From Macrostomum lignano (lineage: Eukaryota): DNA of 64,000 bases. The stretch is from NCBI GenBank assembly GCA_002269645.1, contig NIVC01000374.1, positions 248,001 to 312,000 on the forward strand, in the 5' to 3' direction. This document shows, one piece after another, positions 13,251 to 19,200 of this stretch. Made by a program: the position numbers and the translations under genes. Under the pieces are notes generated by a model. The model was not told the DNA's origin and searched no databases. It saw nothing but the letters and a program-made list of their open reading frames with translations. Each line of letters opens with the position of its first letter. The stretch's first letter is position 1.

Positions 13251-16200
13251 TTACAGCAAAACGCTATTCGGATCAACTCGAGGTGCGACCTGAAATAGTT
13301 TTTTTTAAATTCCCAAATATTACGCAATATTTTTTAAGATAACTCAAATTTTATTAGCTTTTTCTGATATTTCTACTGAAAATAGCTCGCAGTAGCGCAA
13401 TGGAGATTTAGTGCCCCAAAGCAAAACACGAATACGCGATGTTGGCGAAAGCGAAAGCAGTAACGAGGCCTCTTTATTTATATTTTATTGATTAAAAGAA
13501 TAAGGATAAAAGAAGAAGAAAAAAAAAGAACTGCGCGAAAACACTGCCAACGCAGCAGCGCGGCTGGAGTAAAATACCCCCCCCCACCGGCGGAGGGGTG
13601 GGCGCCCACCTAAACAACACAGAACGTACACACGCGGCGGGGGGGGCGCACCACAGACGCAGCGCACTTGGGCACTAAAGCCGGTTTGCTCAAGGCAAGC
13701 CTAGCGCAAACCGCAGCCTTAGTGCCCCAAAGCAAAACACGAATACGCGATGTTGGCGAAAGCGAAAGCAGTAACGAGGCCTCCAAAGCCGAAACAACAA
13801 CGGGAAAGCGCGTGAAAGAAAAAATTGAAGGAAACGGAACATCGTAAAGCTGATGCCAACGTCAAACGAGGGATCCCACACCTCTAGCAAACACGACGGA
13901 AGCTGCCAAGCCCTGCTGCGACTGCGGGAGATACCGCTGCACTGAGTCGCTCTTCCAGTCACCGATCCGCATGATGTCGGGCACCGGCACACCCAACACC
14001 GAGGCCCAGGTCGCGCCGCCACGGCGGAGGCTGTGGGCTGAGAAGTGCTCACGCCTGAAGCCCGCAGCCCCTAGCTTGTCCGCTAGGAAGCGATCGAGCT
14101 GCCTGCCTGTCAGCAGCCGCTGGTTGCCTCCGGCGTCGCGATAAGTGAACAGAGGCGCATCAGCCGATTGCAGATTATTGAATCTTGCGTGCTGCTCGAT
14201 TGCTAACACCGGGCACAGCGACGTCCGCCTCACTAGCCTTGGTAGAAGCACCTGGTGCACCCGCTCTTTGAACTGGAGAGTCTTCCCTTGCTCCAGGCGC
14301 AAGATCAGACCTCGCGGGTGTCGAAAGATGTCAGCGCAGCGCACACGTGCCGGACCTTTTCCCGAAGTCGGTAGCACGCTGGATTTTCGGAGCATGCCCC
14401 ACTAACAGCAGATGGCGACTGCCCAGCATGCCAGCTGAAGCCCGTCAGAACGACTGACTCGCTGATGAATCTCCGACAACATGAGCGGCGATACTGGTCG
14501 TTTTCTCGACACCCGAAGTCCCAGCTCTCGCTTGGCACCTCGCAGGAGGAGAGTCGTTGCGGCATGCTTCGTCAGGTCTGGTGCAGAGTTGACGCGAAAC
14601 CAAACGGACAGCGAGCTGGCGACAGAAGCAACGCTGCCGTACGCACGCAAACGCGTCCCGACTAGGCTGGCCAGGTAGTCGAGCAGGCTGTTCAGCGGAC
14701 AGGATACAGGACTGCAGCGGGTCTGCTTGCAGTAAGCTAGCCACTCACGGATGTGCCTTGCCACCGCCTGCCTTGACCGTGGTGCATAAGAGACGCCTAG
14801 CAGCGACGCGGCCCGGCGGCTGAGAGAGTCTGGCGCAGCTGGACGGCCTGAAAATGAAGAAAGTGGGCAGAGGCAGGGCAGAAAGCATGTCGATGCATTG
14901 ATTGCAAAGCAAACGGGCACAAGTTGCCATAGCAGCGAAATAAAAAATTAATCAACTGACTGCGCTCGTGCAACCGAGACGCTGCATCGGCGAGAATTTG
15001 AAACTCTCCCGGCACATGAAAGGCTCGCACACTCAGACCATGCCGTAAAGACATCAACGCAATCGTTTGCAGTAGCCTCTGCACGACAGGACACCTCGAA
15101 GTGCCATTATTGATAATATGACAGGCCGCCATGTTGTCACAATAAACGCTAACGTTACAGCCTTTCAGCTCTTCCCTCCAGCGCAGGATTGACAGCAAAG
15201 GAGCCACCGCCTCTTTGTAGTTGATTGGCAGATCAGCGAACACTCCGGCCCCATCCTGGCTCCAATTGATGTAGCACCAGTCCCAACTGCCATCTGACCT
15301 TCGAAGCACCGCTGCCCCGCCTCTGCCACATGCATCGGACTCGATGGCCACATGGTTCTTGAAAACAGGCCAGAGCTCCACCCACCGGGCCGACTCCAGC
15401 GCTACAATCCACCAGCAGAATTGGTCACAGAGCTGTAAGCTGACTTTAATTCTCTCGTCAGGCCGCATAGCGTTGCACACTTCGATCAGATCACGCAGAA
15501 AAGTTTTTCCTTTGCGAATCACCTGTGCTGCCCAGCCAAGCTTGCCGATCAAGCGTTGCAAAGCCCGCTTGCTGATCCTGGTTTTGCTCCTTTCAGTTGC
15601 TAACAACTCAGCGAGGTTCCTCGCCTTCTCCTCGGGCAACCTCTTGATGCCGGCCACTGTATCGAACTCGACACCAAGGAAGGTCATGCGCTGAGTTGGT
15701 GTCTGACACTTTGCCCAGTTTACAGTGAAGCCCAGCCGCGTCAACAGGCCTGTCAGCTCGTCGTAAAACCGCTGGCATTCGTCACGCGAGCCCGCGAAGG
15801 CGAAATCGTCCAGGTAGGACTCGGTGCCCACAAAGCCTCTGCGCACCATCATTAAACGCACAGCATTGCTAAGATGGTGAAAACAGGTAACAGAAGCTGC
15901 AGCGCCAAACGGCAAACGGGTGTCATACATGTAGGTGGCTGCCTTGGACTCGCCGAAGCGGAACTTGATCCCTGTCCGGCTGAAATCATCGGGGTGAACA
16001 CCACAGGCGCGGTACGCTTCGCTGAGATCCACCTTAGTCATAAAGCAGCCTCTAGAAAGCTTCCTCGCAAAGTTGTCGGCACACGTGAAGCGCAGCCTCT
16101 CCTGGCTGACCCATCTGGAGTTCACAGAGTTATTCACGGGCCGACTGCAGTCGTGAATCAGGCGCACACGGCCACCAACCTTGGGCAAGGCTCCGAGAGC

Positions 16201-19200
16201 ACTGACCACTTGCGGACGCCAGCCGGTCGGGCACTCGCGATACCTGCCACACCCGAGCTCCTTCTTAATCTGCTTTTCCACAGCCTCGAAATGCACATTG
16301 ACAGAATGGTAGTTGTTAACATCAATTGACTTGCAGTCAGAAACAGTTTTGTTAGTTATACGAAAACCATATGCAACACCATCGAGAATAAACTTCTTCC
16401 GATCCATAGGCAAATCAATACACAACAGCTCCTTCTCCCACTCCACGAACCTCAAATCTGTAGATAAAACGGGGACGTTAAAATCACTACGGGCACTTAG
16501 TCAGTGCGAGGGCCTGGCCGTCTCGATACCCACGCCATCCCGGTGGGCAGCCGCTTCTGAGTGGCCTAGACCGCACCTCCGGCATTGATGAGCAAACTTG
16601 CAGTTTCTTCTGCTGCAACCGGCTTCCTTATTGAAGTCAAAGCACACAGGCTGCTGGCTCCGCTTCGACAGTCTCTCTGAGGCAGTCGGACCCCTCTGTG
16701 GTGCCATCAGGTAGGCGGCCACCAGACCCATGTCGGAGGCTCCGGCTTCCCAAGAGGTAGTAGCTGTCTGGCTTATTCTGCACTCATCGTCGAATCTCAT
16801 GACGCGGGTCTTCTCGAAACCAAGGTCAAAAAGCTCTCCTATCCGAATATTAAAGCGCAGGTAGTCTCGGAGCTCAGAAACATCAGGACATTCTCCTTCA
16901 CCGCTCTTAACTAGAGCTCCATCATCCAGCATCTTCAGCATTATGCGCGCATTGCCAGCAATCCAGTCGCCAAAGGTCAGAGATTCTAACGCTGCCTCCT
17001 TCACTTTGTAGACAACTTTACCTGTCCGATCAACAGACTGGATGATACCCGCTTCCTGCTGCTTGCGTTTACAGATGAATTCGGGGATGCGGTAGGTACC
17101 ATGCGGGATCGCTGGTCTAGCTGACTCACTCCCTGATATCACGTGACCAAACAACTCACCATGGTTAGTTGAGGGAGCCCGGTGCCGCTGCAATAGGTTA
17201 ACCTCGGCCTGCAGCTCGGCTTCTTCCTTGCGCAGTTTCAGCAGCCGTATACGCTGCTCGACTTCCCGCACCTCGTCGTCCAGGCCGCCAGCCGCTCCAG
17301 ACTCTGACGCCGCCGTCGCAGCTTCGCCGTCCGCCGCAGCCGCCAGCAAATCTTGAATGTTCTTCGAGCGAGTCGTCTCCGGGGTCAGTGAAGGTCTGCG
17401 ATCATCGCCGTCCTGCAGTTCTGTAACGCTGTCGATGTGTGCAGACAGCCTCTCCAATAGCTCCATTTTGTTTCCGTGGGTTGGCAGGCCTAGGCATTGC
17501 AACCTCTCGCGCAGTGACTTGACAGTGTCAGTGCTAGCCATGATTCAGCGATTGGCATTAGAGTTCAGTGCAAAAAGAACTGCGCGAAAACACTGCCAAC
17601 GCAGCAGCGCGGCTGGAGTAAAATACCCCCCCCACCGGCGGAGGGGTGGGCGCCCACCTAAACAACACAGAACGTACACACGCGGCGGGGGGGGGCGCAC
17701 CACAGACGCAGCGCACTTGGGCACTAAAGCCGGTTTGCTCAAGGCAAGCCTAGCGCAAACCGCAGCCTTTGTACTATTTTCATATAATGTTAACATATAT
17801 TAAAACGAACCGCTCCAGGCGTAGCCAAAACGTCGGTAGTTGCAGTTGTTGTTGACACAGTTGTCATGGCAACAGATGTTGAAGTTGAGTTTAATGAAGA
17901 TTGCTTCTGCTGCTGCTGTTGAGACTGGGCCCCGGCGCCGTAGAATCTGGGCGATAGCAGGGCGTGGTGAATCTGGTCGCAGACGCGTTTAAAACGTCGC
18001 ACTGGGCCTGTGTGTGGATTAAATTTAAGTTACATTTTCTTGAGACTTTACTAACAGTAGAAATAGCAGTGAATAAAGTGAAATCACGGCCAAGGACTCA
18101 CCTGAGATCAGCTGGAAATTGACAGCAAACAGCAGTCTGTCCGGGTCAGGCCGGTGAATTTCTACCTGGAATTTCACCGGTCGATTGCTGAGCGAAGCGG
18201 CCGCGGCCGCGGCAGCCGCTGGTCGGCGCAGTTCGGCTCGAAAGGACATCGGCGACAGGACCGTGTGAATCAGGTCGGGCGTCTGCAGTAGGGCGTGAAC
18301 TAGGTCGGCTTTCACTCGATTGAGGGGCCGGTCACGGATCAGCACCACGTGACTGCCAGAGGAGGCGTCGGCTGCTGCGGCAGCGGCGGCCACGGCGGCT
18401 GCGGCACCGGAGGCGGCGGAGTTGACGCTTGACGCAGCCACAGCGGTGGTGGCCGGCGGTGCCGCTACTGACTGATGCTGATGCTGATGCTGCTGATGCT
18501 GCTGCTGCTGTGGTGGTGGAAATTAGGGCATTTTCTCTAAATGAATCGATGTACTTTTTATGGATTTGGACTGGGATAACATTGGATAAAGGATGAATTT
18601 AATTATTAAAAATACAGTTGATTTAAGGGTTGATTTAGGGGCGGATAGGGGCAGAAAGAGGGTAAGTTGGGGGCGAATAAATAGGTAGGATGGGGGCGGA
18701 TAAGGGGTAGGTTGGGGGCGGATAAGGTGGTAGGTTGGGGGAGGGATAAAGGGGTAGGTTAGGGCGGATAAAGGAGTAGGTTGCGAGGCGGATAGGGGGT
18801 AAATTGGGGGCGGATAAGGGGTACGTTGGGGCGGATGAGATGTAGGTCTGGGGCGGATAAGGGGTAGGTTGGGGGCGGATAAGGGGTAGGGGCGGATTGG
18901 GTGTGCGCGAATAAGGTTTAGCTCAGGTTGGAAATGAAGAGAAGCTCACTGAGCTCCTCTGATGCTGCTGCTGGTGACCATGGCCGTCGTAATGATGATG
19001 ATGGTGGTGACCTCCGCCACCAGGCAGGAAAGCGGTGAACCAAGATCGGCGAGACAATTCCGGACTGGCTTCCGGCGTTGTACCGGAAGCGAGCGCAATG
19101 GACTGTTGGTGTTGATGATGCTGGTGATGCTGTTGCTGCTGCTGCTGCTGCTGTTGTTGCTGCTGCTGCTGCTGCTGTTGCTGCTGCTGTTTGCTACGCC

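Follow-up and report, generated by a model that had tools for sequence, protein, structure and literature searches.

A conserved donor–acceptor pair suggests that an Ngaro-type retrotransposon of Macrostomum lignano expresses its tyrosine recombinase by splicing

Introduction

How does a retrotransposon express an enzyme whose reading frame lacks a start codon of its own? This question is raised by a 64,000-nt stretch of the genome of the flatworm Macrostomum lignano (contig NIVC01000374.1, positions 248,001 to 312,000; hereafter, the window), which carries a single copy of an Ngaro-type element, a retrotransposon that encodes a tyrosine recombinase (YR). Its open reading frames (ORFs) encode Gag, a reverse transcriptase with RNase H (RT/RH) and the recombinase. 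The gag and RT frames are the same and are separated by a single TGA (16503-16501), and the YR frame is -1 relative to them and overlaps the tail of RT. A preliminary description of this locus had proposed that alternative splicing joins the SAP and coiled-coil head of Gag to either RT or YR, in competition or in coexistence with recoding. We compared the window copy with its relatives and found that one donor in gag and the acceptor before YR are conserved and that the acceptor before RT is not. We consider it likely that recoding serves RT and splicing serves YR.

Results

A gag-internal donor is conserved among relatives

All three phase-1 donors of gag and both phase-1 acceptors, one before RT and one before YR, were found on the minus strand where the preliminary description had placed them (Table 1). 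As it had claimed, the phases match: computed translation across the junction from position 17160 to either acceptor gives an open, in-frame fusion. In the window sequence alone, this splice-like pattern is at chance level. The window contains 6 copies of GGTGAGT where 6.4 would be expected, codon-shuffled gag contains 1.6 phase-1 donor-like sites compared with 2 observed above the same score (P = 0.5), and a site equalling the score of donor 1 was found in 19% of the gag codon shuffles. The significance of the donor at 17159 and the acceptor at 14847 therefore comes from the comparison with relatives only.

We gathered the DNA of 14 loci (L001-L014; WIN denotes the window copy), two of which, L005 and L006, contributed nothing. 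L001-L003, L010, L012 and L014 were from one JGI metagenome, L007, L008 and L013 from Logan runs, and L009 from ENA; L011 is another locus of the M. lignano genome (NIVC01002140.1). L004 came from a metagenome scan with an RT alignment, which returned 3 distant loci, and served for the acceptor comparison. The family is scarce in databases, the first Gag search having yielded three proteins only, and the 13 related loci compared share 24-61% protein identity, with values relative to the window element running from about 60% to about 30%. The donor region was compared in a protein-guided codon alignment; a whole-element nucleotide alignment by MAFFT misplaced the variable linker of Gag and missed the donor.

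Within this poorly conserved linker lies an invariant Gly-Glu pair, encoded by GGT GAG in 9/9 alignable sequences (WIN, L001, L002, L003, L007, L011, L012, L013 and L014). The amino acid that follows varies (L, C, W or S), and the first base of its codon is T in 8/9, which yields G/GTGAGT, the slash marking the splice junction. Gly codons of the family are GGC in 47% and GGT in 19.5% of cases. With the sequences taken as independent, phylogeny ignored and synonymous sites that look saturated, the codon-usage probabilities are 4e-7 for GGT in 9/9, 0.025 for GAG in 9/9 and 1e-6 for T as first base in at least 8/9. A single codon was used in 5 of the 55 invariant degenerate columns, two of which are the GGT GAG pair; the other invariant Gly columns are mixed. 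With a generic position weight matrix (PWM), donor 1 is the highest-scoring sense-strand GT in WIN, L001, L002, L003, L007 and L014. L008 carries T/GTGAGT seven codons upstream of the donor 1 position, also in phase 1. The AlphaFold model of Gag places donor 1 in the disordered segment that separates the SAP/helix module from the globular domain.

The conservation that the preliminary description had named as its check did not extend to its other two donors. Donor 2 (17129) is a chance site: its PWM score is 2.1, and the variable sequence around it cannot be aligned with the relatives, which have nothing equivalent. Donor 3 (17021) is likewise attributed to chance, as the codon of the homologous invariant Gly varies (GGT, GGC, GGG, GGC). 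A short gag intron starting at donor 1 was also rejected, because the downstream linker is open in frame in all copies.

The acceptor coincides with a switch of coding frame

The 3' splice site before YR consists of a pyrimidine tract and CAG. Scanned without bias, the nucleotide alignment contains 15 AG columns common to all sequences, and the mean upstream pyrimidine fraction is 0.88 at 14849-14848 compared with 0.62 at the next best. In WIN, L001, L007, L008 and L011 (150-300 AGs each), no other AG anywhere in the element is as rich in upstream pyrimidines as this acceptor, and in L010 it is the best YAG. TTTCAG/G or CTGCAG/G in phase 1 is also present in L009, L014 and L004, so that the acceptor is found in 9/9 elements covering the junction. 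The junction is phase 1 on both sides in WIN, L001, L007, L008, L011 and L014. Judged from these alignments, chance falls far short of explaining the conservation of the 17159 donor and the 14847 acceptor, which are the best-conserved and top-ranked splice-like sites of the family.

Coding conservation changes frame at the same point. In the RT frame it stops at ..F-L-x-x-Q-A, beyond which the RT tails differ in length and sequence; in the YR frame it starts at the Gly split by the acceptor (G-R-x-A-x-P-D-x-L-S...S-Y-A-P-R-S-R). In 6/7 elements the first in-frame ATG is either 37-152 codons inside YR or absent, and 5/7 elements have no X_XXY_YYZ heptamer in the permitted part of the RT/YR overlap. 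T_TTT_TTA, the candidate slip site of the window copy, occurs only in WIN and L001 (L007 has C_TTT_TTG), and in L008, L011 and L009 a YR-frame stop lies downstream of this position. We therefore rejected it as the RT-to-YR slip site of the family, because it is not conserved and the YR frame is shut downstream in three relatives. With neither a usable AUG nor a conserved slippery heptamer for YR, nothing but the splice pair explains the expression of YR; at gag/RT, by contrast, the same elements have textbook recoding signals. The splice reading gains one independent hint: in a UniProt gene model of M. lignano, A0A1I8G0Z6 (UniRef100; P0114), the YR part begins exactly at the G/R of the acceptor, and the upstream joins are others.

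RT appears to be reached by recoding at the gag stop

A single in-frame stop in the context CAY TGA CTN separates gag from RT in WIN, L001 and L007, and CAC TGA CAT does so in L002; the next 12-13 codons contain no stop, and RT follows in the same frame. In L003, L008, L011, L012, L013 and L014, gag ends with A_AAA_AAC TGA, a heptamer absent from the window copy, and RT is in the -1 frame. The gag stop of L009 is G_GGA_AAC TGA, and many further Gag homologues end in ..KN at the C-terminus. RT thus appears to be reached by UGA read-through in the window element and its subfamily and by -1 programmed ribosomal frameshifting (PRF) in the other relatives, and by these junctions one family alternates between the two, which reads as an evolutionary switch. 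L003, L008 and L013 have GC-rich stems after the heptamer (z -1.6 to -2.3), and the RNA downstream of the UGA in the read-through types has less structure than its shuffled versions. When the region after the gag stop was folded by consensus, no structure common to the relatives emerged, the stems being single-sequence ones of the PRF types only.

The splice route to RT was not borne out. Five close relatives lack the AG at 16458: L001, L002, L003 and L007 have ACT GAC, ACC GAC, TCG GAT or TCG GAC there, and L008 has S-S-D-L. A scan of the alignment near the RT start revealed no conserved AG column. The pyrimidine fraction of the candidate is 0.70, tied for about 4th-8th among 296 AGs. The conserved RT-frame motif F-N-(P)-x-x-I/V-L-S-T/S-D-L is encoded upstream of and around this AG, and the segment upstream of 16458 is therefore translated and not intronic. 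The RT acceptor at 16457 is thus not supported: its AG is lacking in these five relatives, conserved RT peptide lies upstream, and a canonical recoding signal is present at every gag stop.

Predicted products and alternative explanations

In the expression model that we favor, the unspliced RNA would give Gag, and read-through of the gag UGA (UGA-CUA, 16503-16498) would give a Gag-RT/RH fusion from the same RNA. A fraction of the RNA would be spliced from the donor G/GTGAGT (17160/17159) to the acceptor CAG/G (14848/14847), and the proposed intron would take out RT/RH entirely and, of gag, the C-terminal two thirds. The predicted junction reads ...ACTAACCATG/GCCGTCCAGC... and would encode Gag(1-127)-Gly-YR, a protein of 455 residues (roughly 50 kDa) in which the SAP/coiled-coil head is followed by the recombinase that has no start codon of its own. 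The corresponding junction of L011 would lie at about 109677/112093 of NIVC01002140.1 (locus positions 7361/9777). In the window copy, this fusion would end early at a TAG within YR. Of the proposal that the head is spliced onto both enzymes, the part concerning YR is thus retained and the part concerning RT is not; splicing would coexist with recoding, each serving one enzyme. That the element makes Gag, a read-through Gag-RT/RH and, from spliced RNA, a fusion of the SAP/coiled-coil head to YR is, on the comparisons above, likely; the use of both sites by the spliceosome and the making of the fusion protein are what we infer from sequence.

Several observations weigh against this model. The comparison draws on some 10-14 short contigs, of which many share one metagenome as their source and several are frameshifted, and the donor PWM was a generic metazoan matrix not trained on the host. 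L009, which is distant and has a different Gag head, has the acceptor and no clear homologous donor. Two reading frames code across the pyrimidine tract, and part of its conservation could be driven by the protein. A0A1I8G0Z6 may have been predicted ab initio. When 5.8 billion sequences were searched with the predicted fusion, two plain YR ORFs and no fused SAP-YR protein came back, and among the top matches of a HMMER scan with Gag (220 matches) there was no head-only fusion, the one long match being P0114.

The strongest competitor, which we nevertheless regard as unlikely, would dispense with splicing: a Gag-RT-YR polyprotein would be made through a second, non-canonical -1 (or +2) frameshift, and GGTGAGT and the pyrimidine tract with CAG would be an RNA signal or an amino-acid constraint. 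All elements do have YR in the -1 frame of RT, the family uses -1 PRF at gag/RT, and T_TTT_TTA/G lies about 99 nt upstream of the junction in WIN and L001. However, most elements lack a heptamer, the YR frame of L008, L011 and L009 opens just 5-14 codons before the CAG, and RT-frame protein is conserved through the overlap up to the CAG; the synonymous conservation that matches the splice consensus at both ends would be left unexplained. It is also improbable that the acceptor alone is used, with spliced-leader trans-splicing or an internal promoter giving a separate YR mRNA and the donor being unrelated or paired elsewhere. Macrostomum has spliced-leader trans-splicing, a relative of the element is present in M. 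lignano, and the acceptor is strong and conserved, but most elements offer no YR-frame AUG for 37-152 codons and an equally conserved phase-1 donor would have no explanation. A spliced leader ending in AUG was rejected on frame, as at a phase-1 acceptor it would read the RT frame and not YR.

We give very little credence to the absence of any function, with chance splice-like motifs and YR simply unexpressed from such copies. The single-sequence statistics at chance and the nonsense codon in the window YR would agree with it, but both sites are conserved across lineages with saturated synonymous sites and rank first in most elements. Least probable of all is the original form of the proposal, in which gag donors are spliced alternatively to the acceptors of both RT (16457) and YR (14847) and recoding is not needed. 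The window copy has every one of its sites, with matching phases, and the donor at 17159 is conserved; against it stand the loss of the 16458 AG in the five relatives, donors 2 and 3 without conservation, the 13 open codons between the gag stop and that AG, which encode the conserved RT-frame F-N-P..I/V-L-S, and a read-through or -1 PRF signal at every gag stop.

The element and its surroundings

The element was delimited by blastn and repeat finding, and its domains were assigned with Pfam (Table 1). B1 and B2 are 100% identical across 65 nt. By its split repeats, RT, RNase H, YR and lack of a methyltransferase, the element fits the Ngaro type (DIRS order); the repeat layout was taken from PMC8547959 and the absence of a methyltransferase, as opposed to DIRS1 and PAT, from PMC3266345. 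The Pfam scan found no further domain, methyltransferase or other, and only about 75 residues separate RNase H from the RT stop. An Rfam scan gave no match in the window.

Residues 6-36 of Gag form a SAP domain (Pfam E=6.8e-7), and a CCCH-type zinc finger lies near residues 300-330. The AlphaFold model of Gag (mean predicted local distance difference test (pLDDT) score 75.7) comprises the SAP fold (7-45), a long helix (86-119), a disordered linker (121-143, pLDDT<50) and a globular domain (150-280). A Foldseek search with this model matched SAP domains solely, and the globular domain had no match. RVT_1 is at about 15664-16083 (Pfam E=4e-11), and RNase H at about 15070-15363 (RT_RNaseH, E=6e-4, below the gathering score). 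The RT/RH search returned 107 homologues, the nearest proteins being unannotated. For YR, Pfam matched the catalytic domain to Phage_integrase (E=3.3e-4, below the gathering score) and the SAM-like N-terminal domain, extremely weakly, to Phage_int_SAM_4 (E=0.077); the QRY motif is visible in the ORF, and the database searches also returned YR homologues.

The in-frame TAG of the window YR (14404-14402) lies just before the first catalytic Arg, where relatives have Trp (WWGM[LF]R), and is probably a TGG>TAG mutation. Because of this stop, we regard the window copy as slightly damaged; it is otherwise intact, with A1 and A2 98.5% identical. On the L014 contig, the 3' end of a YR ORF (40-378) lies upstream of a gag-RT-YR set of the same type (763-4327), an arrangement that indicates tandem copies or a circular or permuted assembly.

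Table 1 Coordinates of the element, its signals and the gag stops of relatives. Positions are those of the window unless a locus is named; slashes mark splice junctions.
Feature	Position	Strand	Details
Complete YR retrotransposon	13408-17772	-	A1-[gag, RT/RH, YR]-B1 A2 B2
Repeat A1 (5' terminal repeat)	17572-17772	-	98.5% identity to A2
3' repeat block	13408-13783	-	B1 13719-13783, A2 13523-13723, B2 13408-13472
gag ORF	16501-17541	-	346 residues + TGA; coding 17541-16504
Donor 1, ATG/GTGAGT	17154-17162	-	Exon end 17160, intron start 17159; phase 1, after 127 codons + 1 nt
Donor 2, GGA/GTGAGT	17124-17132	-	Intron start 17129; phase 1
Donor 3, CAG/GTAAAG	17016-17024	-	Intron start 17021; phase 1
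gag stop TGA then CTA (UGA-CUA read-through context)	16498-16503	-	RT/RH continues in frame
RT acceptor candidate, ttttatctacAG/ then AT	16458-16470	-	Exon would start at 16457, phase 1; not conserved
RT/RH ORF	14797-16500	-	gag frame after UGA; stop TAG 14799-14797
T_TTT_TTA heptamer	14941-14947	-	RT frame (N-F-L); candidate -1 slip site
3' splice site, pyrimidine tract + CAG	14848-14870	-	...ctttcttcattttcAG/GC; AG 14849-14848, exon start 14847, phase 1 in YR frame
Proposed intron, 2312 nt	14848-17159	-	Predicted from the conserved phase-1 pair
YR exon	13862-14847	-	SAM-like N-terminal domain + catalytic domain R...H-x-x-R...Y; coding to 13865
-1 type gag stop, L003	859-868		
-1 type gag stop, L008	1050-1059		
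-1 type gag stop, L011	8110-8119		
-1 type gag stop, L012	1385-1394		
-1 type gag stop, L013	1145-1154		
-1 type gag stop, L014	1803-1812		
-1 type gag stop, L009	5899-5908		

The element lies about 20 nt downstream of the stop codon (about 17790) of a host gene seen on the same strand in the stretch 17773-18441 (minus strand). The last intron of this gene, of phase 1 and roughly 95 nt long, begins with GTGAGT at 18102 and ends with CACACAG at about 18008, and the host therefore uses the same GTGAGT donor consensus. Its upstream part carries poly-Q, poly-H and poly-A tracts (18923-20116), and at 18620-18906, between host exons and shortly upstream of the surroundings of the element, there is a G-rich tandem array with a degenerate 22-nt unit (GGGGCGGATAAGGGGTAGGTTG). 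Much of the 64 kb is taken up by more than 30 separate minisatellite or microsatellite arrays, whose units measure 4-75 nt and are repeated up to 60 times (for example, 2682-3621, 8356-9775, 10137-11246, 24673-25692, 30108-31515 and 56048-57324); the whole window, including these tandem arrays, gave no Rfam family at the gathering score. Host exons with poly-Q are also present at 43089-45506 and 58634-59686 (both minus strand), one of which resembles, by eye only, a fragment of a Sec7/PH-type guanine nucleotide exchange factor of ADP-ribosylation factor (ARF-GEF).

Discussion

The literature that we found does not address how the overlapping or start-less ORFs of DIRS, Ngaro and PAT elements are translated, and in the YR-retrotransposon literature, which describes ORF overlaps, we found no mention of splicing in these elements. 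The conserved donor and acceptor provide a concrete and cheaply testable mechanism of YR expression, which, if true, would be to our knowledge the first defined expression mechanism for any YR-retrotransposon recombinase. The window element belongs to a known superfamily, and its expression strategy is apparently undescribed. We lean towards the view that a clade of SAP-Gag Ngaro elements, flatworm elements included, expresses YR solely via a subgenomic mRNA spliced from the deeply conserved gag donor to an acceptor at the first YR codon, and that its Gag-RT recoding has switched type within the clade. The recombinase would then carry a SAP DNA-binding head and a coiled coil, both shared with Gag, with bearing on target choice and on tetramer assembly on circular cDNA, and it is plausible that a recombinase which has to synapse DNA would profit from a SAP DNA-binding motif together with an oligomerising helix. 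A retrovirus-like split, with Gag and Gag-Pol from unspliced RNA and a third gene from spliced RNA, would exist in a lineage with a different integration enzyme.

Gene finders will mis-model such elements. A0A1I8G0Z6, annotated as a 758-aa 'SAP domain-containing protein', strings together the entire Gag, about 90 aa of RT and the entire YR; this composite model passes over the frameshift and the greater part of RT, the element having been mis-annotated as a host gene. The pair of GGTGAGT and pyrimidine tract with CAG, together with ..KN* or UGA-CUA at the gag stop, can be used as family signatures for annotation.

Retroviral gag-pol recoding includes gammaretroviral read-through, the leaky context UGA-CUA(G), and -1 PRF on A_AAA_AAC at gag-pro of mouse mammary tumor virus (MMTV). 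The present family likewise has one in-frame leaky stop (UGA CUA) or, at the end of gag, a canonical heptamer with a GC-rich stem behind it, and it differs in that both types alternate among relatives at about 50% identity and in that the read-through type has no downstream structure. A subgenomic spliced mRNA would be shared with avian sarcoma-leukosis virus (ASLV), in which the gag AUG and first 6 codons are spliced in frame to a downstream gene to give the env mRNA, and with foamy viruses, which make the pol enzyme from a separate spliced mRNA instead of as a Gag fusion. ASLV donates 6 codons, whereas the window element would donate 127 codons that encode two structural modules, and both viruses are retroviruses with long terminal repeats (LTRs), protease and integrase.

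Among YR elements, the window copy shares with Ngaro the A1-[ORFs]-B1A2B2 layout, the order gag-RT/RH-YR, the lack of a methyltransferase, and the H-x-x-R and catalytic Tyr of YR (PMC8547959, PMC3266345). It differs in its N-terminal SAP and coiled coil of Gag, its gag/RT recoding signals and its conserved splice pair. The ORFs of Ngaro are said usually not to overlap (PMC3266345), in contrast to the -1 overlap of RT and YR here. Alternative splicing of genomic RNA that sets protein ratios is known from Ty1/Copia elements of Arabidopsis and from Drosophila copia, where a subgenomic GAG RNA leads to overproduction of Gag (PMC5580714); that splicing removes pol, whereas the splicing proposed here would remove the C-terminal part of gag and RT/RH to reach YR. 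The closest mechanistic analogue is the SD' RNA of murine leukemia virus (MLV), in which a gag-internal donor is joined to a pol acceptor to give P50, a protein with the N-terminus of Gag and the C-terminus of integrase (PMC10496198, PMC2925334). As proposed here, the element would share with MLV a gag-internal donor, an in-frame fusion to the integration enzyme and an unspliced RNA that yields Gag as well as, by read-through, Gag-Pol. Of integrase, however, P50 includes no more than the final 116 aa, and it is an accessory product, whereas in the window element the whole recombinase would need the splice, and the integration enzyme is a DDE integrase in MLV and a tyrosine recombinase here.

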